A DNA stretch of 64,000 nt from Blastocladiella emersonii ATCC 22665. Taxonomy: Eukaryota > Fungi > Blastocladiomycota. The DNA is taken from NCBI GenBank assembly GCA_025594325.1, contig JANHCV010000016.1, forward strand, positions 497,734 through 561,733, given 5' to 3'. Positions 48,006 to 64,000 of the stretch are shown piece after piece. Position 1 is the first letter of the stretch; the number at the start of each line of letters is the position of its first letter. The notes under the pieces are model-generated. The model did not search any database. It had not been told where the DNA came from and saw only the letters and a list, made by a program, of their open reading frames with translations. The translations under genes and the position numbers were made by a program.

Positions 48006-51000
48006 ATGGTCGGTTCTCGATTTGGCCTGCGCGCCGCCCTGGTCGCCGCCGTCGCTGGCTATGCCGCGGCGACCCCCTTCCTCCACACGGTCAACCAGCA
48101 GTACCCGAACGGCACCATGTGGTACGTCGCCTCGCCGGCTCTTCGACCTGCTGAAGGTGGCAACGATCGCTCACGCGCCCGCCGATCCCTGTCCGTAGCG
48201 AGCTGCCGAGCTTCCTCGACCAGTCGTGCCCGCAGCTCTGCGCGTCCGACGTGGCCAAGTGCCCCGACGCCTACCGGCCCAAGTGCCCCGCCGGCACCAC
48301 CTACTGCGTCGACGGCACCTGCCAGGCCTCGTGCCCCGCCGACGCCGTGTCGCCGTGCGCGTGCCCGTCGTCCTTCGACTCGTCCTTCGACACGTACAAG
48401 TCGTGGTACCCGTGCATGGCCGACGCCGGCAAGCCCGAGACGGGCCTCCTCGTCGTCAACCTGACCAAGGTGCAGCCCACCAACCGCGCCGACCGCCTGC
48501 TCGAGGTGTGCAACGCCCAGATCCTGCGCAGCGCAGCCGACAAGGACGCGACCGCCTTCCTCGCCTGCCCCGTCCGCGTCGTCCCCGCCTACACGCTCGA
48601 CCTGCCCATCTGGAAGTCGTTCTGGGGCATGCTCGGCATCCAGGCCACCGTCATCGCCTTCTTCCTCGCCCTCAAGACCGTCTCCGAGCGCTCGATCCGC
48701 AAGGCCGCCGACGCCTTCGCCGCCGGCTCGGGCTCCGACTCGGACGAGCCGCTCGCCGCCGCGACCGCCGCCCCCGGCGAGAAGCAGCTGCTCGAGCACT
48801 TCCGCCATGACTCGTTCTTCGATGTCCACGCCCTGCCCGCCTCGACCAAGATCGCCGAGAAGGCCGCCTCCGTGACCCCCGCCAAGAAGCTGTCGCCCAG
48901 CGACCCGGGCTACATCCGCTTCGCCTACTACGTCAACCACCCGCTCGGCACTCTCGGTTTCTACCTCTCGGTCGCCTGGATCCTGTACCTGCAGGTCTTC
49001 CTCGCCCTCACCGTCTACGACTACTACGGCTCGCTCTCGGCCACGCCCACGGTCCTCTTCTACCTCACCGACTACCAGATCCCCTTCGGCTTCGTGTTCG
49101 CGTGGCACTTCATGGTCATCACCCTCGTCGTCTGGCGCATCGGCGGCGTCGTCACGGTCCGCAACTGGTTCCGCATCCGCGTCCGCGACGTGCACCAAGC
49201 CCAGTTCGTCGTCGTCACCCGCCGCATCGACGCGATCCGCGCCACGGACCACGCCGAGAAGGGCTTCATCAAGGGCATGCTCGCCCTCGTCGCCGCTGTC
49301 GAGCGCCTCGCCGACCAGTACCTCAAGTTCTCACTCAAGGTCACGGCCCACCAGGTCCACATCTCGCAGCACGTCCGCGTCCCCTACTTTTACGACGAGT
49401 GCATCCGCTACGTCTACAACCCGCTCGTGCGCGACTTCACCCCGTACCCGTACTCGCTCGGCGACGGCCTCAGCGAGCTCGCGGCCCTCGGCAACGCCAC
49501 AGCCGACAAGGGCGGCCTCCCGACCGAGACGGTCGACCAGCGCCAGGACCTGATCGGCCTCAACGAGATCGACATCCCCGCCCGCAGCTTCGTCGACCTG
49601 TGGACGTCCGAGGTCGGCGGCTGGTTCTACCTGTACCAGGGCAGCTGCCTGTGGGTCTGGTACTACTTCTCGTACTGGCAGATGGGTCTCGTCCTCACGG
49701 TCGTGATCCTGATCGCCTCGCTCATCAAGACCCGCGTCAGCTTCAAGTCGCACCGCCGCATCCGCATGCTCGCCTCCATGACCACCAACGTGACGGTGCT
49801 GCGTAACGGCGCGTGGACCGTCGTCGACAGCCGCGCCCTCGCGCCCGGCGACGTGGTCCAGGTCTCGGCCGGCGTCCTGTCGGTCGACGTGCTGCTGTGC
49901 CGCGGCCAGGCCCTGCTCGACGAGAGCTCGCTCACGGGCGAGTCGCGCCCGATCCGCAAGTTCCCCGCCCCGACGAACGACGAGTCGTCGCTCAGCTTCA
50001 CGCACCACAAGCGCCACATCCTGCTCGCCGGCACGGGCATCCTGCAGGCCGACGAGGGCGCCTACGGCCTGGTGCTCAAGACCAACGTCAACACGTCGCG
50101 CGGCCAGCTCATCCAGAAGATGCTGCACCCGACGCCCATCACTTTCGTCTTCGACGAGCAGCTCAAGGTCGTGCTCGTGATGATGCTGACGTGGGGCGTG
50201 CTGTGCTTCTCCATGGTCCTGTACGAGATGGGCAACGGCACCATCGCGTCGTGGTTCTACGCGCTGTTCATCATCTCCGAGATCATCTCGCCGCTGCTGC
50301 CCGCGGTGCTCGTCGCCGGCCAGTCGGTCGCCGCCGACCGCCTCGTGTCCAAGCACCAGGTGTACTGCATTGACCTGCCGCGCATCACCATGGCCGGCAA
50401 GACGCAGCTCTTCTGCTTCGACAAGACGGGCACGCTGACCAAGGAGGGGCTCGACATGTGGGGCTTCCTCCCCGCCTCGGCCTCGCTGCCGAACGGCGGC
50501 GGTGACGGCGACGCGTCGTCGGGCAAGCTGATCGAGCTCCAGTCCGACTACGCCCGCCTCGGCGCCCAGGACCGCCTCGGCCTCGCCACGGCGCACTCGC
50601 TCACGGCGCACGAGCGCCAGCTGCTCGGCAACCCGGTCGACGTGTCCATGTTCGAGTTCACGGGCTGCGCCCTGCAGGGCGACGATGTGACGGCCGCCAC
50701 GGGCGAGTCGCTCGCGCGCATCGTCAAGCGCTACGAGTTCATCCACGCCAAGCAGACCATGGCCTCGCTCGTCGAGTCGACCGTCGACAAGAAGCTGCAC
50801 ATCTTCGTCAAGGGCTCGTACGAGAAGATCCGCGCCATGTGCGTGCCCGGCTCGATCCCCGCGTGGTACGACGAGATGGCGCGCGGCTACGCCAAGCGCG
50901 GCGGCTACGTGCTCGCGCTCGCGTCCAAGCCGTGCTCGCTGTCCATCGACGCCGCCATCCACCAGGACCGCGACGACGTCGAGCGCGACGTGTCGCTCAT

Positions 51001-52489
51001 GGGCCTCGTCGTCTTCCGCAACACGCTCAAGCCCGACACCAAGGACGCCATCGACGAGCTGCACCGCGGCCTGTGCCGCACCGTCATGATCTCGGGCGAC
51101 AACGTGTTCACGTGCGTGTACATTGCCCGCGAGTGCGGCCTCACGCCCATCGTCAACGAGCAGTACGCGCGCTGCATCTATGCCGACATTGCCGGTGCCG
51201 GCGAGGACTCGGTCACGTCCAGCCGCCGCAACAGCAACACGTCGTCGTCGGCCTCGTCGTCGGTCCCCGCCCCCGGCTCGCTCGTCTGGCGCGACGTCGA
51301 CACCGAGGAGATCATCTCGCCCGCCGAGCTCGACGCCCTGTGGCAGCAGCGCAACGTCAAGGCGCTCGACCTCGCCGCCTCGGGTCCCGCGTGGGCCAAG
51401 CTCGTCGACTCGGGCGACGCCGACAAGTACCTCCTGTCGTTCCGCGTGTGGGGCCGCATGTCGCCCGAGCAGAAGATCGACGTGGTCAAGCGCCACATGG
51501 CCGACGGGCTCATCGTCGCCATGTGCGGTGACGGCGGTAACGACTGCGGTGCTCTCAACGCGGCGCACGTCGGTGTCGCGCTGTCCGAGGCCGAGGCCTC
51601 GATCGTCGCGCCCTTCTCGTCCAAGACCAAGTCGGTCCGCTCGTGTGTCGACCTCATTGCCGAGGGCCGCGCCGCGCTCGCGTCGTCGTTCGCCGGGTTC
51701 AAGTTCCTCATCATGTACGGCATGACCATGTCCAGTTTCTGCCTGGTCCAGTACTACTTCTCGGTCGTGCTGCCGCAGTGGGTGTGGATCTACATCGACG
51801 GCATCATCGTCGTGTCGACCATCTACGCGCTCACGCAGGCCAAGGCGCTCAAGCACCTCGAGCCCCGCCGCCCGACCGCGCAGCTGCTCGGGCCGCAGAC
51901 CATCCTCTCGATCCTGTCGCAGGCCGCCGTCAACTGGACCTACCTGTTCCTCGGCATCTACTGGCTGTTCCAGCAGGACTGGTTCCGCTGCAACGAATTC
52001 GACGCGTCCGCGGTCGTCGACCTCGGCAAGTGGTGGCTCCTGGGCGACAACTACGAGTCGACCATGATCTCGGCCATCGTCGTGTGCCAGTTCATCAACA
52101 ACGGCGCCGTCTTCAACTTTGGCCACTACTTCCGCCGCTCGTGGTTCTCGAACCGCGTGTACGCGCTCCTGTACGTGGTGCTGCTCACGGTCATCTCGAC
52201 GCTCATCCTCTCGGACCCGTCGGCCTTCACATGCCTGTTCCGCATTAACTGCGGCAGCCCATCGTCACTCGTCGAGCTCGGCTACCCCAAGCCGACGTGG
52301 TCCATGGACCCGTACAACTCGCTGCTCGGCCACAACGTCCTGCCCGTGCCGTTCCGCTGGAAGCTCTTCACCTACGTCATGTCCAACGTCGTGCTCGGCC
52401 TCTGCATCGAGCGCCTCGTCATCCTCGGCCCCGTCCGCGAGTACATTCGCACCAAGTACCCGCTCTCGCGCAAGTACATTCCCCTGTAA
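48006..52489 (+). CDS. P5-type (ATP13A/Ypk9-like) P-type ATPase with an N-terminal signal peptide and Cys-rich domain; intron after exon 1 (~48122-48198)
   Basis: DESSLTGES (A domain), CFDKTGTLT (phosphorylation site), FVKGSYEKI, MISGDN, RMSPEQK and MCGDGGNDCGALNAAHVGVALSEAEASIVAPFSS (P5B-like). Exon 1 MVGSRFGLRAALVAAVAGYAAA is a signal peptide. Confidence 0.88.
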
Positions 52490-54294
52490 TTCACTCGTCC
52501 CTCACCTAGTCTGCACCCCTATTGCACTATTCCAATCATAGATCTCGATTTTTTGACTACTCCACCATCTCGCCTTTCATCATCTTGAGCTGTTCGTTCG
52601 CTGGAAGAGTGAGTGCGGTGCGGTGCGGAAGAGAAACCGACTGAGGAAGAAAGAAGCATGGAGGCGCGACTGGTAACGGAGGCGGGGCGAGCGGCAGGTG
52701 CGCTTAGAGGGGGTCAAAAGGGGGTAGGCGGTGAAGAGCGAATCCACACGAGGCCGGAGGAGCGCAGGCTGGTGGTTGCCAGCGAGGAGTCCTAGCTGCA
52801 AGAGCGTGAGCGCGTAATACGGCTCTAGTTTGCCGCACCTCAAACGCTGCACAACCCAAGTGTGGCGGCTCCAAGGTGACTCTGACCAAGGACCAAACTC
52901 GAACGCTGCTGCAGCCGTATTACACACGTGCTTCTTGCCAATTGCCTGACGCTAGGTTGTAGATCTTTCAAAGATCTATCAAAGAGTATAACAAAGGTTG
53001 GGGGTGACTTGAGTCACATAAGGGAGCAATGGGCAGCAAATGTGTCTCACGCTTGAGTCGACCGCACAAGGGCGAAACGATCAGATTGGACGTGGACACC
53101 TTCAGAAACCTTTGAGTAGACTATTCCATCTGCCGAATGCCGCTGAGAACGCGCGCATAAGTCAAAGGGTGATTCCAAATGGGCGTTGTCAACCTCATCG
53201 AGTTGTGTCCAAACCGACCCCACGAGGCCAAGAAGACCAGATTGAGCATGCTCACTTTGACCAACTATGTTCGTTCAGCTATCAGCTGCAGATTGCTGTC
53301 GAGAACACGCGCCTAGGTCAAAGGGTGATTCCAAACGGGCGTTGACGCGCAAAGTCCCTCGCCGCAACCCTCTTGCTGCGGCGAGGTCGCGCGCAACTCC
53401 ACCTTGCCTGCCAACACGTCAAAGCTCAATCACCACCGTTGATCCGTCCAGCAGGCGGCGTTATGGAGTCTGTAGCAAAGAGTAACGTGCACGCAAGCAG
53501 CACCTTTGAGCAGCGCTGTAGAGGGGAAGTAAGCAAACTTTGAGCGCTCAATGCTGCCCACGAGATGGAGCGCGATCTTTCCCAGCTGTGTCTCATTGCA
53601 CGCAAGGTGAGCAGCAGTGGCTCGTCAAGCAGGCAAGGAACAGGACAGAGTAGGGAAGGCGTGAGGGAGCCGATCTGAAGCTAAGCGTGTTCCGGAGCAC
53701 CCTGCTGAGTCGAACGCGTGCTCAGCACGGCGCGCGTGCAGGCAGGCAGCCGCAGTAGCAAGTAGCGACAGGCGGGGGCTGCTGCTTCCACATGCAAGCG
53801 TGAGACCTGCGCGCGCGCGTGTGATAACAGCAAGGAAACCAAAGTAGCAAGGGTGGCGGCGATGGTGCGCCGCGGCAGCAGGTGCGTTCCGCGTCGGAGA
53901 GCGAGCCGCCGCTGCCCCACCGCCCAGAACAGGCGCGGCCGCTCTGGGATTCGGGATGGGATCGAGAGCAGAGCGGAGGGAGCGCGACGCGAGGTCAACA
54001 ACGACGACAAGCCGGACGAACACCATCAAGTCACCCAACCCACCGTGTTGCTTGCTCGTGGGCCGGGTCGGCCTACGCCCGCCGCCGCACCGACCACTCG
54101 CCCGTCCAGTTTGAGCACCATCTCGAGTTTGGCGGCAGGTCCGAGTACCTTGCTCGCTGCGCAGCGAGATCCCACAGCGAGGCAGCGAGCGAAGGCGGCT
54201 CTCACGGAGGCCAGGAGCAGCGGCGCGAGCAGCGCAGGTGGGGCGGGTGGGACCTGCGCGGGCGCGCGGAAACCAGACGACAAGCACACGCGCG

Positions 54295-54318
54295 CGAGCG
54301 AGCGAGCGAGCGAGCGAG
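54295..54318 (+). repeat. (GCGA)n microsatellite within each array unit
   Basis: gcgagcgagcgagcgagcgagcga, present in each full copy. Confidence 0.8.
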
Positions 54319-55020
54319 AAGGGAGGCGAGTCCATTCGAGACACGACGAGAGAGCGCCGCGCCGCGCCGGTCAAAGGTTGAGGGTGGGGGTGGGTGCTGG
54401 CGGCGGGGGCCGCCAGCACACGATTTTTCGATCATACCCTTCACTTGAGGGCAGCAGTAGCAGCGTAGGGGCGCAATGCAGCAAGACGGATCACCCAAAA
54501 CCCTCAAACGCAGCTGCCGCCGCTGGATCAAGTCTAGACGGGAGGAGTCGAGTTGCCTCCGTGGCGAGAAGGGCGGCGGTCCGAGTCTGCGTTCCAGACG
54601 CCAGGATCGCATCCATTCGAGGCACAGATGCATGTTGCAGCGGGTCATATATTCCATGAGATGTCATTGCGGGTTTGGTGAAGTCTCGACTTTGGGGATG
54701 AGTGAGCGGTCGCGATCGCCGCGCGAGCAAGCGAAAACAGCTCGGGCATCAGGTGACAATTGCCTGACCGCTGCGAGACGCGTTTCGAGACGCGCTTTTG
54801 GCGCTCTGCCTCGGGAGACGGGCAGACGACGCACAACTGCCTCCCAACACCACACGCTTGATTGAGCCCATGCCGCGTTGCGCGGTGGGTGCATCACGTT
54901 CACATCGCAGAGTACGCACACGCGCGGGGGCCCAGAAGGCACTTGGGCAAAGTTGTTTTATGTATCGTCGGGGAGTAGTGAGCCAAAGCAGTCAGGTCTC
55001 TCTAGTTCCGGGCTGGCGAG

Positions 55021-55037
55021 CAGGGTTCGAGTCCCTG
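55021..55037 (+). promoter_or_regulatory. tRNA T-arm-like hairpin containing a consensus Pol III B-box (repeated at 57761, 60501, 63241)
   Basis: CAGGG-TTCGAGT-CCCTG is a perfect 5-bp stem with a 7-nt T-loop. GGTTCGAGTCC matches the B-box consensus GGTTCGANTCC. Confidence 0.5.
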
Positions 55038-58000
55038 TCGCATCTCGTCCAGTCCGCGTCATAGTATTGTAAAGGAGCCAGAGTTGCTCTGGCTGCGATG
55101 GTTCGCTACTCCAGTGGAGCAGTTGAGGCTTGGGCCGCGTACGGTGCATGTCCTGCGGCAGACACACACGTATCATGATTGGGCGCCTAGCGTAAGATCC
55201 CGTGGCCAGGTGGTCATCTTAGACTCAACCCGCAATCGTGGCGAATCCACGGGATAGAGGTGGAACAGATCCGGCTCAGTGGCAGTGAGCACGGTGAACA
55301 CAGCAGCTCCCAGCCCCAAGCGGCTGCTCCCTCCCTTTTGCACCATACAAGAAAATTGCGTTTACCTAAAGTACATGAAGGCGTGCACCGTACCTGCGTT
55401 TTGAGCCACTGTTACGCCGGATCAGATCAAGAACAGTGGGTTGTCGCTGTTTGCTGAACCTTCCTGAAGCCAGCTCAAGCCGTGTCCAGCGGGCGTATCT
55501 CAGAAATTTCACGTAGAACGTGTGCATGTCATGGCTAGCAAAGTTGCTTAGCTTGCGTACGGCTCTAGTTTGCCGCACCTCAAACGCTGCACAACCCAAG
55601 TGTGGCGGCTCCAAGGTGACTCTGACCAAGGACCAAACTCGAACGCTGCTGCAGCCGTATTACACACGTGCTTCTTGCCAATTGCCTGACGCTAGGTTGT
55701 AGATCTTTCAAAGATCTATCAAAGAGTATAACAAAGGTTGGGGGTGACTTGAGTCACATAAGGGAGCAATGGGCAGCAAATGTGTCTCACGCTTGAGTCG
55801 ACCGCACAAGGGCGAAACGATCAGATTGGACGTGGACACCTTCAGAAACCTTTGAGTAGACTATTCCATCTGCCGAATGCCGCTGAGAACGCGCGCATAA
55901 GTCAAAGGGTGATTCCAAATGGGCGTTGTCAACCTCATCGAGTTGTGTCCAAACCGACCCCACGAGGCCAAGAAGACCAGATTGAGCATGCTCACTTTGA
56001 CCAACTATGTTCGTTCAGCTATCAGCTGCAGATTGCTGTCGAGAACACGCGCCTAGGTCAAAGGGTGATTCCAAACGGGCGTTGACGCGCAAAGTCCCTC
56101 GCCGCAACCCTCTTGCTGCGGCGAGGTCGCGCGCAACTCCACCTTGCCTGCCAACACGTCAAAGCTCAATCACCACCGTTGATCCGTCCAGCAGGCGGCG
56201 TTATGGAGTCTGTAGCAAAGAGTAACGTGCACGCAAGCAGCACCTTTGAGCAGCGCTGTAGAGGGGAAGTAAGCAAACTTTGAGCGCTCAATGCTGCCCA
56301 CGAGATGGAGCGCGATCTTTCCCAGCTGTGTCTCATTGCACGCAAGGTGAGCAGCAGTGGCTCGTCAAGCAGGCAAGGAACAGGACAGAGTAGGGAAGGC
56401 GTGAGGGAGCCGATCTGAAGCTAAGCGTGTTCCGGAGCACCCTGCTGAGTCGAACGCGTGCTCAGCACGGCGCGCGTGCAGGCAGGCAGCCGCAGTAGCA
56501 AGTAGCGACAGGCGGGGGCTGCTGCTTCCACATGCAAGCGTGAGACCTGCGCGCGCGCGTGTGATAACAGCAAGGAAACCAAAGTAGCAAGGGTGGCGGC
56601 GATGGTGCGCCGCGGCAGCAGGTGCGTTCCGCGTCGGAGAGCGAGCCGCCGCTGCCCCACCGCCCAGAACAGGCGCGGCCGCTCTGGGATTCGGGATGGG
56701 ATCGAGAGCAGAGCGGAGGGAGCGCGACGCGAGGTCAACAACGACGACAAGCCGGACGAACACCATCAAGTCACCCAACCCACCGTGTTGCTTGCTCGTG
56801 GGCCGGGTCGGCCTACGCCCGCCGCCGCACCGACCACTCGCCCGTCCAGTTTGAGCACCATCTCGAGTTTGGCGGCAGGTCCGAGTACCTTGCTCGCTGC
56901 GCAGCGAGATCCCACAGCGAGGCAGCGAGCGAAGGCGGCTCTCACGGAGGCCAGGAGCAGCGGCGCGAGCAGCGCAGGTGGGGCGGGTGGGACCTGCGCG
57001 GGCGCGCGGAAACCAGACGACAAGCACACGCGCGCGAGCGAGCGAGCGAGCGAGCGAGAAGGGAGGCGAGTCCATTCGAGACACGACGAGAGAGCGCCGC
57101 GCCGCGCCGGTCAAAGGTTGAGGGTGGGGGTGGGTGCTGGCGGCGGGGGCCGCCAGCACACGATTTTTCGATCATACCCTTCACTTGAGGGCAGCAGTAG
57201 CAGCGTAGGGGCGCAATGCAGCAAGACGGATCACCCAAAACCCTCAAACGCAGCTGCCGCCGCTGGATCAAGTCTAGACGGGAGGAGTCGAGTTGCCTCC
57301 GTGGCGAGAAGGGCGGCGGTCCGAGTCTGCGTTCCAGACGCCAGGATCGCATCCATTCGAGGCACAGATGCATGTTGCAGCGGGTCATATATTCCATGAG
57401 ATGTCATTGCGGGTTTGGTGAAGTCTCGACTTTGGGGATGAGTGAGCGGTCGCGATCGCCGCGCGAGCAAGCGAAAACAGCTCGGGCATCAGGTGACAAT
57501 TGCCTGACCGCTGCGAGACGCGTTTCGAGACGCGCTTTTGGCGCTCTGCCTCGGGAGACGGGCAGACGACGCACAACTGCCTCCCAACACCACACGCTTG
57601 ATTGAGCCCATGCCGCGTTGCGCGGTGGGTGCATCACGTTCACATCGCAGAGTACGCACACGCGCGGGGGCCCAGAAGGCACTTGGGCAAAGTTGTTTTA
57701 TGTATCGTCGGGGAGTAGTGAGCCAAAGCAGTCAGGTCTCTCTAGTTCCGGGCTGGCGAGCAGGGTTCGAGTCCCTGTCGCATCTCGTCCAGTCCGCGTC
57801 ATAGTATTGTAAAGGAGCCAGAGTTGCTCTGGCTGCGATGGTTCGCTACTCCAGTGGAGCAGTTGAGGCTTGGGCCGCGTACGGTGCATGTCCTGCGGCA
57901 GACACACACGTATCATGATTGGGCGCCTAGCGTAAGATCCCGTGGCCAGGTGGTCATCTTAGACTCAACCCGCAATCGTGGCGAATCCACGGGATAGAGG

Positions 58001-61000
58001 TGGAACAGATCCGGCTCAGTGGCAGTGAGCACGGTGAACACAGCAGCTCCCAGCCCCAAGCGGCTGCTCCCTCCCTTTTGCACCATACAAGAAAATTGCG
58101 TTTACCTAAAGTACATGAAGGCGTGCACCGTACCTGCGTTTTGAGCCACTGTTACGCCGGATCAGATCAAGAACAGTGGGTTGTCGCTGTTTGCTGAACC
58201 TTCCTGAAGCCAGCTCAAGCCGTGTCCAGCGGGCGTATCTCAGAAATTTCACGTAGAACGTGTGCATGTCATGGCTAGCAAAGTTGCTTAGCTTGCGTAC
58301 GGCTCTAGTTTGCCGCACCTCAAACGCTGCACAACCCAAGTGTGGCGGCTCCAAGGTGACTCTGACCAAGGACCAAACTCGAACGCTGCTGCAGCCGTAT
58401 TACACACGTGCTTCTTGCCAATTGCCTGACGCTAGGTTGTAGATCTTTCAAAGATCTATCAAAGAGTATAACAAAGGTTGGGGGTGACTTGAGTCACATA
58501 AGGGAGCAATGGGCAGCAAATGTGTCTCACGCTTGAGTCGACCGCACAAGGGCGAAACGATCAGATTGGACGTGGACACCTTCAGAAACCTTTGAGTAGA
58601 CTATTCCATCTGCCGAATGCCGCTGAGAACGCGCGCATAAGTCAAAGGGTGATTCCAAATGGGCGTTGTCAACCTCATCGAGTTGTGTCCAAACCGACCC
58701 CACGAGGCCAAGAAGACCAGATTGAGCATGCTCACTTTGACCAACTATGTTCGTTCAGCTATCAGCTGCAGATTGCTGTCGAGAACACGCGCCTAGGTCA
58801 AAGGGTGATTCCAAACGGGCGTTGACGCGCAAAGTCCCTCGCCGCAACCCTCTTGCTGCGGCGAGGTCGCGCGCAACTCCACCTTGCCTGCCAACACGTC
58901 AAAGCTCAATCACCACCGTTGATCCGTCCAGCAGGCGGCGTTATGGAGTCTGTAGCAAAGAGTAACGTGCACGCAAGCAGCACCTTTGAGCAGCGCTGTA
59001 GAGGGGAAGTAAGCAAACTTTGAGCGCTCAATGCTGCCCACGAGATGGAGCGCGATCTTTCCCAGCTGTGTCTCATTGCACGCAAGGTGAGCAGCAGTGG
59101 CTCGTCAAGCAGGCAAGGAACAGGACAGAGTAGGGAAGGCGTGAGGGAGCCGATCTGAAGCTAAGCGTGTTCCGGAGCACCCTGCTGAGTCGAACGCGTG
59201 CTCAGCACGGCGCGCGTGCAGGCAGGCAGCCGCAGTAGCAAGTAGCGACAGGCGGGGGCTGCTGCTTCCACATGCAAGCGTGAGACCTGCGCGCGCGCGT
59301 GTGATAACAGCAAGGAAACCAAAGTAGCAAGGGTGGCGGCGATGGTGCGCCGCGGCAGCAGGTGCGTTCCGCGTCGGAGAGCGAGCCGCCGCTGCCCCAC
59401 CGCCCAGAACAGGCGCGGCCGCTCTGGGATTCGGGATGGGATCGAGAGCAGAGCGGAGGGAGCGCGACGCGAGGTCAACAACGACGACAAGCCGGACGAA
59501 CACCATCAAGTCACCCAACCCACCGTGTTGCTTGCTCGTGGGCCGGGTCGGCCTACGCCCGCCGCCGCACCGACCACTCGCCCGTCCAGTTTGAGCACCA
59601 TCTCGAGTTTGGCGGCAGGTCCGAGTACCTTGCTCGCTGCGCAGCGAGATCCCACAGCGAGGCAGCGAGCGAAGGCGGCTCTCACGGAGGCCAGGAGCAG
59701 CGGCGCGAGCAGCGCAGGTGGGGCGGGTGGGACCTGCGCGGGCGCGCGGAAACCAGACGACAAGCACACGCGCGCGAGCGAGCGAGCGAGCGAGCGAGAA
59801 GGGAGGCGAGTCCATTCGAGACACGACGAGAGAGCGCCGCGCCGCGCCGGTCAAAGGTTGAGGGTGGGGGTGGGTGCTGGCGGCGGGGGCCGCCAGCACA
59901 CGATTTTTCGATCATACCCTTCACTTGAGGGCAGCAGTAGCAGCGTAGGGGCGCAATGCAGCAAGACGGATCACCCAAAACCCTCAAACGCAGCTGCCGC
60001 CGCTGGATCAAGTCTAGACGGGAGGAGTCGAGTTGCCTCCGTGGCGAGAAGGGCGGCGGTCCGAGTCTGCGTTCCAGACGCCAGGATCGCATCCATTCGA
60101 GGCACAGATGCATGTTGCAGCGGGTCATATATTCCATGAGATGTCATTGCGGGTTTGGTGAAGTCTCGACTTTGGGGATGAGTGAGCGGTCGCGATCGCC
60201 GCGCGAGCAAGCGAAAACAGCTCGGGCATCAGGTGACAATTGCCTGACCGCTGCGAGACGCGTTTCGAGACGCGCTTTTGGCGCTCTGCCTCGGGAGACG
60301 GGCAGACGACGCACAACTGCCTCCCAACACCACACGCTTGATTGAGCCCATGCCGCGTTGCGCGGTGGGTGCATCACGTTCACATCGCAGAGTACGCACA
60401 CGCGCGGGGGCCCAGAAGGCACTTGGGCAAAGTTGTTTTATGTATCGTCGGGGAGTAGTGAGCCAAAGCAGTCAGGTCTCTCTAGTTCCGGGCTGGCGAG
60501 CAGGGTTCGAGTCCCTGTCGCATCTCGTCCAGTCCGCGTCATAGTATTGTAAAGGAGCCAGAGTTGCTCTGGCTGCGATGGTTCGCTACTCCAGTGGAGC
60601 AGTTGAGGCTTGGGCCGCGTACGGTGCATGTCCTGCGGCAGACACACACGTATCATGATTGGGCGCCTAGCGTAAGATCCCGTGGCCAGGTGGTCATCTT
60701 AGACTCAACCCGCAATCGTGGCGAATCCACGGGATAGAGGTGGAACAGATCCGGCTCAGTGGCAGTGAGCACGGTGAACACAGCAGCTCCCAGCCCCAAG
60801 CGGCTGCTCCCTCCCTTTTGCACCATACAAGAAAATTGCGTTTACCTAAAGTACATGAAGGCGTGCACCGTACCTGCGTTTTGAGCCACTGTTACGCCGG
60901 ATCAGATCAAGAACAGTGGGTTGTCGCTGTTTGCTGAACCTTCCTGAAGCCAGCTCAAGCCGTGTCCAGCGGGCGTATCTCAGAAATTTCACGTAGAACG

Positions 61001-64000
61001 TGTGCATGTCATGGCTAGCAAAGTTGCTTAGCTTGCGTACGGCTCTAGTTTGCCGCACCTCAAACGCTGCACAACCCAAGTGTGGCGGCTCCAAGGTGAC
61101 TCTGACCAAGGACCAAACTCGAACGCTGCTGCAGCCGTATTACACACGTGCTTCTTGCCAATTGCCTGACGCTAGGTTGTAGATCTTTCAAAGATCTATC
61201 AAAGAGTATAACAAAGGTTGGGGGTGACTTGAGTCACATAAGGGAGCAATGGGCAGCAAATGTGTCTCACGCTTGAGTCGACCGCACAAGGGCGAAACGA
61301 TCAGATTGGACGTGGACACCTTCAGAAACCTTTGAGTAGACTATTCCATCTGCCGAATGCCGCTGAGAACGCGCGCATAAGTCAAAGGGTGATTCCAAAT
61401 GGGCGTTGTCAACCTCATCGAGTTGTGTCCAAACCGACCCCACGAGGCCAAGAAGACCAGATTGAGCATGCTCACTTTGACCAACTATGTTCGTTCAGCT
61501 ATCAGCTGCAGATTGCTGTCGAGAACACGCGCCTAGGTCAAAGGGTGATTCCAAACGGGCGTTGACGCGCAAAGTCCCTCGCCGCAACCCTCTTGCTGCG
61601 GCGAGGTCGCGCGCAACTCCACCTTGCCTGCCAACACGTCAAAGCTCAATCACCACCGTTGATCCGTCCAGCAGGCGGCGTTATGGAGTCTGTAGCAAAG
61701 AGTAACGTGCACGCAAGCAGCACCTTTGAGCAGCGCTGTAGAGGGGAAGTAAGCAAACTTTGAGCGCTCAATGCTGCCCACGAGATGGAGCGCGATCTTT
61801 CCCAGCTGTGTCTCATTGCACGCAAGGTGAGCAGCAGTGGCTCGTCAAGCAGGCAAGGAACAGGACAGAGTAGGGAAGGCGTGAGGGAGCCGATCTGAAG
61901 CTAAGCGTGTTCCGGAGCACCCTGCTGAGTCGAACGCGTGCTCAGCACGGCGCGCGTGCAGGCAGGCAGCCGCAGTAGCAAGTAGCGACAGGCGGGGGCT
62001 GCTGCTTCCACATGCAAGCGTGAGACCTGCGCGCGCGCGTGTGATAACAGCAAGGAAACCAAAGTAGCAAGGGTGGCGGCGATGGTGCGCCGCGGCAGCA
62101 GGTGCGTTCCGCGTCGGAGAGCGAGCCGCCGCTGCCCCACCGCCCAGAACAGGCGCGGCCGCTCTGGGATTCGGGATGGGATCGAGAGCAGAGCGGAGGG
62201 AGCGCGACGCGAGGTCAACAACGACGACAAGCCGGACGAACACCATCAAGTCACCCAACCCACCGTGTTGCTTGCTCGTGGGCCGGGTCGGCCTACGCCC
62301 GCCGCCGCACCGACCACTCGCCCGTCCAGTTTGAGCACCATCTCGAGTTTGGCGGCAGGTCCGAGTACCTTGCTCGCTGCGCAGCGAGATCCCACAGCGA
62401 GGCAGCGAGCGAAGGCGGCTCTCACGGAGGCCAGGAGCAGCGGCGCGAGCAGCGCAGGTGGGGCGGGTGGGACCTGCGCGGGCGCGCGGAAACCAGACGA
62501 CAAGCACACGCGCGCGAGCGAGCGAGCGAGCGAGCGAGAAGGGAGGCGAGTCCATTCGAGACACGACGAGAGAGCGCCGCGCCGCGCCGGTCAAAGGTTG
62601 AGGGTGGGGGTGGGTGCTGGCGGCGGGGGCCGCCAGCACACGATTTTTCGATCATACCCTTCACTTGAGGGCAGCAGTAGCAGCGTAGGGGCGCAATGCA
62701 GCAAGACGGATCACCCAAAACCCTCAAACGCAGCTGCCGCCGCTGGATCAAGTCTAGACGGGAGGAGTCGAGTTGCCTCCGTGGCGAGAAGGGCGGCGGT
62801 CCGAGTCTGCGTTCCAGACGCCAGGATCGCATCCATTCGAGGCACAGATGCATGTTGCAGCGGGTCATATATTCCATGAGATGTCATTGCGGGTTTGGTG
62901 AAGTCTCGACTTTGGGGATGAGTGAGCGGTCGCGATCGCCGCGCGAGCAAGCGAAAACAGCTCGGGCATCAGGTGACAATTGCCTGACCGCTGCGAGACG
63001 CGTTTCGAGACGCGCTTTTGGCGCTCTGCCTCGGGAGACGGGCAGACGACGCACAACTGCCTCCCAACACCACACGCTTGATTGAGCCCATGCCGCGTTG
63101 CGCGGTGGGTGCATCACGTTCACATCGCAGAGTACGCACACGCGCGGGGGCCCAGAAGGCACTTGGGCAAAGTTGTTTTATGTATCGTCGGGGAGTAGTG
63201 AGCCAAAGCAGTCAGGTCTCTCTAGTTCCGGGCTGGCGAGCAGGGTTCGAGTCCCTGTCGCATCTCGTCCAGTCCGCGTCATAGTATTGTAAAGGAGCCA
63301 GAGTTGCTCTGGCTGCGATGGTTCGCTACTCCAGTGGAGCAGTTGAGGCTTGGGCCGCGTACGGTGCATGTCCTGCGGCAGACACACACGTATCATGATT
63401 GGGCGCCTAGCGTAAGATCCCGTGGCCAGGTGGTCATCTTAGACTCAACCCGCAATCGTGGCGAATCCACGGGATAGAGGTGGAACAGATCCGGCTCAGT
63501 GGCAGTGAGCACGGTGAACACAGCAGCTCCCAGCCCCAAGCGGCTGCTCCCTCCCTTTTGCACCATACAAGAAAATTGCGTTTACCTAAAGTACATGAAG
63601 GCGTGCACCGTACCTGCGTTTTGAGCCACTGTTACGCCGGATCAGATCAAGAACAGTGGGTTGTCGCTGTTTGCTGAACCTTCCTGAAGCCAGCTCAAGC
63701 CGTGTCCAGCGGGCGTATCTCAGAAATTTCACGTAGAACGTGTGCATGTCATGGCTAGCAAAGTTGCTTAGCTTGCGTACGGCTCTAGTTTGCCGCACCT
63801 CAAACGCTGCACAACCCAAGTGTGGCGGCTCCAAGGTGACTCTGACCAAGGACCAAACTCGAACGCTGCTGCAGCCGTATTACACACGTGCTTCTTGCCA
63901 ATTGCCTGACGCTAGGTTGTAGATCTTTCAAAGATCTATCAAAGAGTATAACAAAGGTTGGGGGTGACTTGAGTCACATAAGGGAGCAATGGGCAGCAAA

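Follow-up and report, generated by a model that had tools for sequence, protein, structure and literature searches.

A non-coding tandem array beyond the last gene

What replaces the genes at the end of this contig of Blastocladiella emersonii, and does the sequence repeated there carry a function of its own? The window analysed here, 64,000 nucleotides long, ends where contig C8 (561,733 bp) ends. Its last gene is a plus-strand open reading frame of 1,412 amino acids (48251-52489) for a P-type (P5-like) ATPase, in which a Pfam search detected the domains E1-E2_ATPase (1.3e-19), Hydrolase (5.5e-10) and Cation_ATPase (2.9e-4). A unique spacer of 328 bp (52490-52817), close to the 330 bp or so of the initial annotation and without homology to the end of the repeat unit, separates the ATPase stop codon from the array. 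Spacing and self-comparison place a 2,740-bp unit in head-to-tail order on the plus strand from 52818 to 64000; at the left border a run of mismatches begins and the repeat match breaks off precisely at 52817/52818. Copies begin at 52818, 55558, 58298, 61038 and 63778, the last being cut by the window end. No mismatch was found between successive copies across these five starts, so that the array described earlier as at least four identical repeats amounts to 4.08 copies at 100% identity; because the array runs off the contig, this copy number is a lower bound. Its GC content is 0.593 against 0.684 for window bases 1-52000, which bears out the impression that the array is less GC-rich than the genes.

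The unit is non-coding. A Pfam search of 16 open reading frames in the unit returned no domain, a Rep or helicase domain included, and the open frames differ among the variants of the unit found on C8 and on two further contigs, C18 and C11, through indels whose lengths are not divisible by three. The first impression that these frames hold no recognisable domain was therefore sound, and a tandem array of a protein-coding gene can be discarded, the frame being unconserved between the variants. The same holds for the statement that rRNA, 5S and snRNA are missing: Rfam gave no match to these or to any other family in 50000-58500 at E≤1. ARAGORN found no tRNA or tmRNA. A search for terminal direct or inverted transposon repeats in the unit was negative, as first noted, and an LTR, TIR or Helitron transposon was rejected on this ground, together with the empty Pfam search of the 16 frames and the variable phase at which the arrays begin (see below).

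Sister arrays and the telomere

Related arrays occupy two other contig ends. The one at the end of C18 begins at 2005206 and comprises 5.9 copies of a 2,745-bp unit 99.3% identical to that of C8; the one at the start of C11 (C11:95-18781) comprises 6.5 copies of a 2,857-bp unit about 95% identical. (AAACCT)n occupies positions 1-94 of C11 and meets the array without a gap at unit position 2029, whose equivalent in C8 lies at 54846 (+) according to a comparison of the junctions. Read along the unit, the C11 sequence passes straight into (GGTTTA)n, that is, TTTAGG telomere repeats, the motif also given for the published assembly of this species (PMC9730499). All three arrays share one orientation relative to the chromosome end: C8 end (+), C18 end (+), C11 start (-). 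Because the C11 array abuts telomere repeats and each of the three is directed towards the chromosome end, the evidence supports a subtelomeric macrosatellite at at least three chromosome ends, telomere-joined on C11 and, on C8, stopping at the end of the contig. Among the possibilities raised by the initial annotation, the subtelomeric one is thus upheld. The ends of C8 and C18 are probably chromosome ends, and the arrays account for the points at which the published assembly breaks off on these contigs.

Copies of one array resemble each other more than they resemble copies of another. Comparison of adjacent copies gave no difference over 15,743 positions in C11, none in C8 and 5 in C18, where three of the five fall in the ill-defined first 8 bases of the array; from one array to another the divergence is 0.7-5%. 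Each array is flanked by its own unique sequence and begins at its own phase of the unit, namely position 1 on C8, 948 on C18 and 589 on C11. A solo piece of the unit on C20 crosses the unit junction (2740 to 1), so the tandem arrangement must have existed in vivo. Fragments of the unit are also dispersed on C5 and C17. We attach no meaning to the near-coincidence of breakpoints at unit positions 589 (C11) and 600 (C20), which is compatible with chance (about 12%, given 15 junction pairs).

These observations bear on two readings that we consider highly improbable. One is an assembly artefact, in which a sequence present in one or a few copies was falsely expanded or its identity was created by the assembler. 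The perfect identity of the C8 and C11 copies within their arrays and the fact that C8 stops inside the array are what such an error might look like. Mis-assembly is nonetheless unlikely because the three arrays differ in unit variant (2740, 2745 and 2857 bp), in their unique flanks and in start phase, and one of them carries a telomere cap. The C20 piece spanning the junction also speaks against it, as does the mean length of the HiFi reads from which the assembly was built, 10.5 kb, or more than three units (PMC9730499). The other reading is a centromeric satellite, or a concatemer derived from a rolling-circle element, a Helitron or an episome. A long, homogeneous, non-coding unit would suit either origin. 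Against a centromere, the arrays are terminal on contigs or chromosomes, with one directly under a telomere. Against a concatemer, the unit contains no Rep/helicase or other domain, and what appears to be the unit junction reflects only where in the unit the C8 array happens to start; it is not the terminus of an element, given that the arrays begin at phases 1, 948 and 589. Both of these earlier proposals thus lose their footing.

A constrained block with features of an RNA gene

One part of the unit stands apart. A block of about 374 nt (unit positions 2149-2522), here called X, lies on the plus strand at 54966-55339 and, in identical copies, at 57706-58079, 60446-60819 and 63186-63559; its 5' end is unmapped and could reach upstream to about 54932. 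Constraint, paralogues, fold and compensatory pairs all single out this block. The genome holds 19 copies at five loci, among them a single isolated copy on C20 and a pair on C6 that is 85% identical to the X of the arrays, and a covariance model of the X core run over the genome recovered only these 19. Array variants diverge by 3-4% elsewhere in the unit and by almost nothing in X: relative to C11 we counted 1 substitution where about 14 were expected (P 1.4e-5), and relative to C20, 2 where about 12 were expected (P 7e-4). The constrained stretch, unit 2142-2527, agrees with the predicted RNA, and the first differences on its 3' side fall at unit 2528-2531. Similarity between the array X and the C6 copies begins at the predicted 5' end and is lost right after a T-run; some 250 bp upstream of X are also common to the C6 copies and the array unit. 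Relative to C6, X divides into a 5' domain of about 147 nt that is 27% diverged and a 3' core of about 225 nt that is 7% diverged. An argument for selection from the identity of the C6 pair was withdrawn, both copies lying within an inverted duplication that is itself 100% identical.

The predicted fold of X has a minimum free energy of -162 kcal/mol, with z-scores of -3.8 and -3.6 against shuffled sequence, and both G-U pairs and folding energy favour the plus strand. Five pairs are changed on both sides between X and C6, compared with 1.2 ± 1.0 in shuffles (0/500) and 0-1 in slid controls; this covariation rests on one diverged lineage, C6, because exact-pattern scans of metagenome contigs and viral contigs for homologues returned nothing. 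In the fold predicted from a single sequence, the changes break 13 pairs, fewer than the 21 expected (p ~0.004). When the alignment was weighted 3:1 towards the array copies, eight pairs were broken in the C6 copy, and each of the three substitutions inside the array family disrupts a predicted pair of X.

Signals of the polymerase III type accompany the fold. A T-arm-like hairpin with a 5-bp stem and a 7-nt loop (55021-55037, +) contains a perfect B box, GGTTCGAGTCC, at 55024-55034, an exact match to GGTTCGANNCC. This B box is invariant in 19/19 copies and, in the 64-kb window, occurs only in the four copies of X. The 38-nt block around the hairpin has a single difference from C6; its divergence is 2.6%, that of the 5' domain as a whole 27%. 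No convincing A box (TRGCNNAGTGG) lies 30-60 nt before the B box; the best match, with 2 mismatches, precedes it by 68 nt (54945) and lies upstream of the presumed start of X, and the C6 copy has none at ≤2 mismatches. Promoters with A and B boxes borne in a leader have fungal precedent in the RPR1, SNR52, tRNA-5S and tRNA-RUF70 genes (PMC2566860). The conserved block closes with a T4 run (55336-55339, +), delimited by alignment with C6 and a candidate polymerase III terminator. It is weak by fungal standards: the run is T8 in the C6 paralogues, and the U6 genes of B. emersonii end in T8-T9. About 190 nt 5' of X, a direct repeat, GAGACGCG-TTTC-GAGACGCG (54775-54794, +), emerged from alignment of the array unit with C6, is retained in the C6 paralogues and is a possible upstream control element of X. 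A promoter motif shared by the upstream region with U6 or RNase P-like genes proved unconvincing.

X resembles no catalogued RNA closely. In 54900-55400 at E≤10, Rfam reported only a weak match to the tRNA-like mascRNA (E 0.1; 20.8 bits, below the cut-off of 42.5) and one chance-level match of 15 nt; at gathering thresholds the C6 and C20 loci gave nothing. X is neither RNase P nor SRP RNA, and MRP RNA was likewise rejected: better candidates are sited elsewhere in the genome, which has separate SRP-like, RNase P-like and U6 genes outside X. Telomerase RNA was dismissed since X has no stretch complementary to TTTAGG; the sole ACCTAAA, which C11 has in mutated form and C6 lacks, sits 25 nt 3' of the T-run.

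Two alternatives to an RNA gene must be weighed at this point. The block could be part of a plain subtelomeric satellite with no RNA product, either as a DNA element, such as a replication element or a TFIIIC/B-box site that acts as a boundary or tether, or as the result of local gene conversion between ends. The architecture is typical of subtelomeric satellites as outlined in PMC8287924, no piece of the 5' domain varies less than the B-box block, and the disruption of predicted pairs by substitutions in the array family fits a DNA element as well. A binding site, however, leaves unexplained some 380 bp of constraint ending exactly at the T-run, as well as the compensatory changes and the z-score of the fold, and the block is retained at three non-telomeric loci. 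We therefore judge this alternative unlikely, though it is the one to be taken most seriously. Less probable still, X might be a selfish polymerase III retroelement, such as a tRNA-derived SINE, the array having grown from a transposon-rich chromosome end. The tRNA-like B-box hairpin near the 5' end, the length of about 370 nt and the dispersed fragments of the unit on C5 and C17 would be in keeping with such an origin. A retroelement would be expected in more than five loci and 19 copies, a number that even the covariance model did not raise, and retroposed copies would not be expected to share the 250 bp upstream that C6 and the array unit have in common. X moreover lacks an A-rich or LINE-like tail, its 3' end has no other genomic match at E≤10, and ARAGORN detects no tRNA-like gene.

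Lesser features are scattered over the rest of the unit. The window contains 49 TCAAAG/CTTTGA sites where shuffles give 13.1 ± 3.5, with 10 per unit against only 7 across 52.8 kb of genes. Nine of those in each unit form a cluster with the core GTCAAAGG (52968-53543 in the first copy), and the C11 variant keeps 7/10 of the sites of the unit. On the strength of this enrichment the GTCAAAGG cluster may be regarded as a set of candidate protein-binding sites. A repeat search revealed an internal 62-nt direct repeat (53127-53188 and 53283-53344, +; 84% identical), both copies of which bear one GTCAAAGG site. The segment 53600-54430 stands out in composition (GC ~0.67) and contains a (GCGA)7 microsatellite at 54290-54318 plus a G-run, and a 9-bp GC hairpin followed by T5 at 54396-54428; its long open reading frames are not conserved between variants.

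A proposed RNA gene amplified at chromosome ends

The reading that we favour, with a probability of roughly 0.6, is that X is an orphan polymerase III-type RNA gene, about 374 nt long and amplified in at least three subtelomeric macrosatellite arrays, its expression and function being predicted. The option of an array of an unknown ncRNA gene, raised by the initial annotation, thus gains substance in silico from a conserved, structured block of that length with a B box and a T-run. In outline, a non-coding unit of 2.7-2.9 kb is repeated head-to-tail in fixed orientation and would fill the interval from the last gene to the telomere. Within each array, copies presumably stay identical through gene conversion or unequal exchange; exchange between chromosome ends would be rarer, and each end would therefore have its own variant. 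X is the single constrained element of the unit and would be transcribed toward the telomere. From its features we infer transcription, the polymerase, processing and a function: polymerase III would start from the tRNA-like B-box hairpin in the fast-evolving 5' "leader" domain of about 147 nt and stop at the T-run, and the functional RNA would be the 3' domain, which evolves slowly and is about 225 nt long. The arrays would provide a high dosage of the X gene, as 5S or rDNA arrays do.

One could go further and see in X a new, abundant and structured family of polymerase III-type RNA specific to blastoclad fungi, amplified next to telomeres, present on C6 in two copies with strong terminators, and contributing its conserved 3' domain of about 225 nt to an undescribed ribonucleoprotein. 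We advance this fuller version only tentatively, at somewhat less than even odds. Subtelomeric satellites are common and mostly regarded as filler; here the unit is organised around a sequence resembling an RNA gene, constrained, structured and retained also at non-telomeric loci. If X is transcribed, it would represent an orphan RNA family from early-diverging fungi, whose non-coding RNAs are almost unstudied, and chromosome ends would act as a dosage reservoir for a non-ribosomal RNA.

Several known systems offer partial analogies. Like X, tRNA-derived SINEs are a few hundred nucleotides long with a B-box hairpin in the 5' part, whereas X has no dispersed retroposed copies and no tail, and its upstream flanks are common to loci. 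RPR1, SNR52, ZOD1 and the Yarrowia tRNA-5S and tRNA-RUF70 dicistrons (PMC2566860) have, like X, a tRNA-like B box in a faster-evolving 5' part and an end at a T-run; unlike in genes of the RPR1/SNR52/ZOD1 type, the A box of X is unconvincing, and removal of a leader is a proposal. The Sultan arrays of Chlamydomonas reinhardtii, as portrayed in PMC8287924, are formed by a species-specific tandem element directly beside the telomere at many ends, with copies closer within an end than between ends, as in B. emersonii. In contrast to Sultan, the B. emersonii array is known so far at three or more ends, and its unit has a constrained block resembling an RNA gene that occurs also at non-telomeric loci. 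The unit is also about three times as long as that of Sultan. The human D4Z4 macrosatellite, with a 3.3-kb unit in the subtelomeres of 4q and 10q, is likewise kilobase-scale and GC-rich, recurs with high identity on different chromosomes and is endowed with a gene in each unit. That gene is the protein-coding DUX4, whereas the B. emersonii unit has no conserved open reading frame and an RNA-type element instead. A further parallel is offered by tandem RNA genes in subtelomeres. The oocyte 5S arrays of Xenopus lie near telomeres, and rDNA is found at chromosome ends in the class D subtelomeres described for Chlamydomonas in PMC8287924. X differs from these in matching no rRNA, 5S or other Rfam family; what its arrays would have in common with them is an RNA gene repeated in tandem in the subtelomere, an arrangement that in those systems supplies gene dosage.

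Tandem arrays at contig and chromosome ends

The array is a perfect tandem repeat of a 2,740-bp unit spanning 52818-64000 of the window (unit position 1 being 52818), with copies starting at 52818, 55558, 58298, 61038 and 63778 and no mismatch between successive copies. The repeat match breaks sharply at 52817/52818, 328 bp past the stop codon of the flanking ORF, a P-type ATPase (48251-52489), and GC content is 0.593 in the array versus 0.684 in the preceding 52 kb. These data bear out the initial annotation as to the period, the identity of the copies, their lower GC and the start about 330 bp beyond the ATPase gene. The window corresponds to 497734-561733 of contig C8, whose final base is 561,733; the array thus reaches the contig end and its copy number, 4.08, is a lower bound. 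The assembly examined comprises 32.65 Mb in 21 contigs; the published ATCC 22665 assembly has 21 contigs (N50 2.02 Mb; PacBio HiFi reads of ~10.5 kb, LJA) and telomere motif AAACCT (PMC9730499).

Sister arrays were not retrieved with the whole unit as query; a 377-nt piece yielded 19 copies. One array runs from C18:2005206 to, and past, the right contig end; its unit, a variant of 2,745 bp that shares 99.3% identity with that of C8, is present 5.9 times. Another occupies the minus strand of C11:95-18781, where a variant of 2,857 bp (~95% identity) is repeated 6.5 times, and C11:1-94 consists of telomere repeats fused directly to unit position 2029. Contigs C2 and C11 both open with such (AAACCT)n tracts, that is, TTTAGG telomere repeats. 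The C2 tract is 889 bp of (AACCTA)n (C2:1-889), and the 9 kb beyond it contain no 2.7-kb unit, so the array is not present at every chromosome end. Read from the interior outwards, the C8, C18 and C11 arrays share one orientation, the unit's plus strand running on into the G-rich telomere strand. The three arrays bear the hallmarks of a subtelomeric repeat family: the telomere-joined C11 array, the location at three ends and the common orientation all favor the subtelomeric macrosatellite among the options first proposed.

The initial annotation had also suggested aligning the copies. Adjacent copies show no differences in C8 or C11 and five in C18 (three of which fall in its first 8 bases, where the array boundary is fuzzy), while the arrays are 0.7-5% apart. 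The proximal flanks of the C11 and C18 arrays are paralogous (93% identity across 2.76 kb) and encode a phosphodiesterase with a receiver domain. These last genes before the arrays (C11:19883-22480 and C18:2001496-2004400) are PDEase_I paralogues with ~93% DNA identity; the receiver domain was seen in the C11 copy, for which more upstream sequence was read. The region is a subtelomeric segmental duplication containing a signalling gene. The C8 flank is unrelated to either, although the C8 array is nearly identical to that of C18, which suggests that array sequence was recently transferred between non-homologous ends. An isolated fragment of the unit, C20:873433-875657 (96% identity), contains unit 1099-2740 followed by 1-600; since it crosses the unit junction, it must come from a tandem copy.

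Short degenerate fragments with 75-95% identity to the unit are present at C17:13173-16302 and C5:1206826-1206982. They take in a 62-nt internal repeat family, located 14 kb from the C17 start, and those on C17 may be the relic of another subtelomere. Sequence sharing among contig ends is frequent: the C20 start recurs, as its reverse complement, at the ends of C4, C15 and C16, the C21 start matches the C5 and C3 ends, and the C4 start matches the C7 end, so a few further repeat families account for breaks in the assembly. The C12 termini are reverse-complementary, and C13 has CTG/CAG runs at both ends.

Nature of the repeat unit

None of 16 unit ORFs matches a Pfam domain, and the long open frames of the GC-rich part shift frame among the C8, C18 and C11 variants because the intervening indels are not multiples of three. 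A search for terminal direct or inverted repeats found none. The unit is thus non-coding and not a transposon, as the initial annotation held in seeing neither coding capacity nor the terminal repeats of a known TE. Its suggestion of a rolling-circle concatemer fared less well: the arrays start at unit positions 1 (C8), 948 (C18) and 589 (C11), so what looks like a unit junction in the window does not mark the end of an element, and the want of a fixed end rules out a Helitron or other rolling-circle element.

TCAAAG/CTTTGA sites (core GTCAAAGG) number ten per unit, and nine cluster inside 576 bp; only seven occur in the 52.8 kb of genes, and the whole window has 49 versus 13 ± 3.5 in window shuffles. 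Seven of the ten are retained in the C11 variant, and they are candidate protein-binding sites. Once per unit (window 54380-54428), the telomere-ward strand has a G-run, possibly forming a G-quadruplex, then a perfect 9-bp GC hairpin and T5.

A constrained, structured element in each unit

Between C8 and C11, 88 positions are substituted outside unit 2149-2522 (3.7%) and one inside (Poisson P 1.4e-5); between C8 and C20, 58 differ outside and two inside (P 7e-4). A difference-free stretch against C20 (unit 2142-2527) coincides with window 54966-55339 (+), the first copy of this candidate RNA gene, RNA X. Paralogues with 85% identity lie at C6:725715-726089 (+) and 933007-933381 (-). Similarity between C6 and the unit climbs at the predicted 5' end of RNA X and drops off immediately past its T-run; some 250 bp upstream show weaker, patchy similarity, including a GAGACGCG-TTTC-GAGACGCG repeat. 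A covariance model of the core found no paralogues beyond these known copies in the genome, and metagenome and viral contigs, scanned for exact patterns, gave no homologues.

The two C6 copies are mutually identical, which is uninformative because both sit within a perfectly identical inverted duplication (C6:725590-727589 and 931507-933500, ~207 kb apart). Its identity is 100% from 125 nt upstream of RNA X to at least 1.5 kb downstream and ~80% further upstream; the whole may form a palindrome of very large size. Several small-RNA genes, namely U6, an RNase P-like RNA and RNA X, are arranged as inverted pairs whose members lie tens to hundreds of kb from each other (C11:1755494(+)/1775232(-), C17:899240(+)/927840(-) and the C6 pair).

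RNA X folds at -162 kcal/mol (z -3.8; C6 copy, z -3.6) into a 5' domain, formed by a branched hairpin of ~147 nt, and a ~225-nt 3' domain that is multi-branched and has a long closing helix. In the consensus structure, five pairs differ at both bases between the array lineage and the C6 lineage and yet remain paired (shuffles, 1.2 ± 1.0, 0/500 reaching five; slid controls, 0-1). In the C8-only fold, 13 changed pairs are broken versus 21 expected (p about 0.004). Both folding energy and the G-U pairs point to the plus strand.

Comparison with Rfam, another proposal of the initial annotation, returned no family at E≤1. Relaxing this to E≤10 added a tRNA-like (mascRNA) match, below the cut-off, at the B-box hairpin and a 15-nt match at chance level, but nothing more. 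Other loci in the genome encode SRP-like RNAs (C6 and C15) and RNase P-like RNAs (three, on C17), as well as three U6 genes, and RNA X was accordingly rejected as an SRP or RNase P RNA. The RNase P-like paralogues (C17:1027453-1027784, 899240-899584 and 927839-928183; 59 and 49 bits to RNaseP_nuc) have 5' and 3' ends in common, a GCTATAAA box ~35 nt upstream and no downstream T-run; no clear RNase MRP RNA candidate was identified. Telomerase RNA was rejected, as RNA X lacks a TTTAGG template and the downstream ACCTAAA is not conserved. The latter (window 55364-55370, unit 2547-2553), which consists of the complement of one telomere repeat and an extra base, sits 25 nt past the T-run and is probably due to chance, being mutated in the C11 variant and missing in C6. 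Nor does RNA X have the behaviour of a SINE: there are five loci, with upstream sequence in common and no tail.

Proposed expression and known parallels

Divergence is 27% in the 5' domain and 7% in the 3' core. Within the former, a 38-nt block (2.6%) surrounds a hairpin that resembles a T arm and carries a perfect B box, GGTTCGAGTCC. We propose that RNA polymerase III would transcribe RNA X from this internal hairpin and stop at the T-run; the rapidly evolving 5' domain would be a leader bearing the promoter, the conserved 3' domain the functional RNA, and the arrays would supply RNA X dosage. Counting against this scheme are the failure to find a convincing A box, a T-run of only T4 in array copies (T8 in C6 copies, T8-T9 in U6 genes) and three substitutions inside the array family that disrupt predicted pairs. 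The main rival explanation is that the B-box block acts at the DNA level, for example by binding TFIIIC as a boundary or tether. As for the array of an unknown ncRNA gene envisaged in the initial annotation, each unit does contain a constrained block with a predicted fold, RNA X, whose transcription we infer.

The arrays sit at contig or chromosome ends and are homogenised per end around a constrained, structurally coherent, telomere-facing block. The feature is real, a non-coding subtelomeric macrosatellite, and as such of a known kind; what is unusual is its core, a constrained orphan element that resembles an RNA gene of the polymerase III type. A close parallel to the arrays is provided by the Sultan arrays of Chlamydomonas, whose elements duplicate inside a subtelomere and far more rarely move between subtelomeres (PMC8287924). 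For the leader-promoter layout, fungal precedent exists in RPR1, SNR52 and the tRNA-led 5S and RUF70 genes, whose organization matches the leader and functional RNA that we envision for RNA X (PMC2566860).
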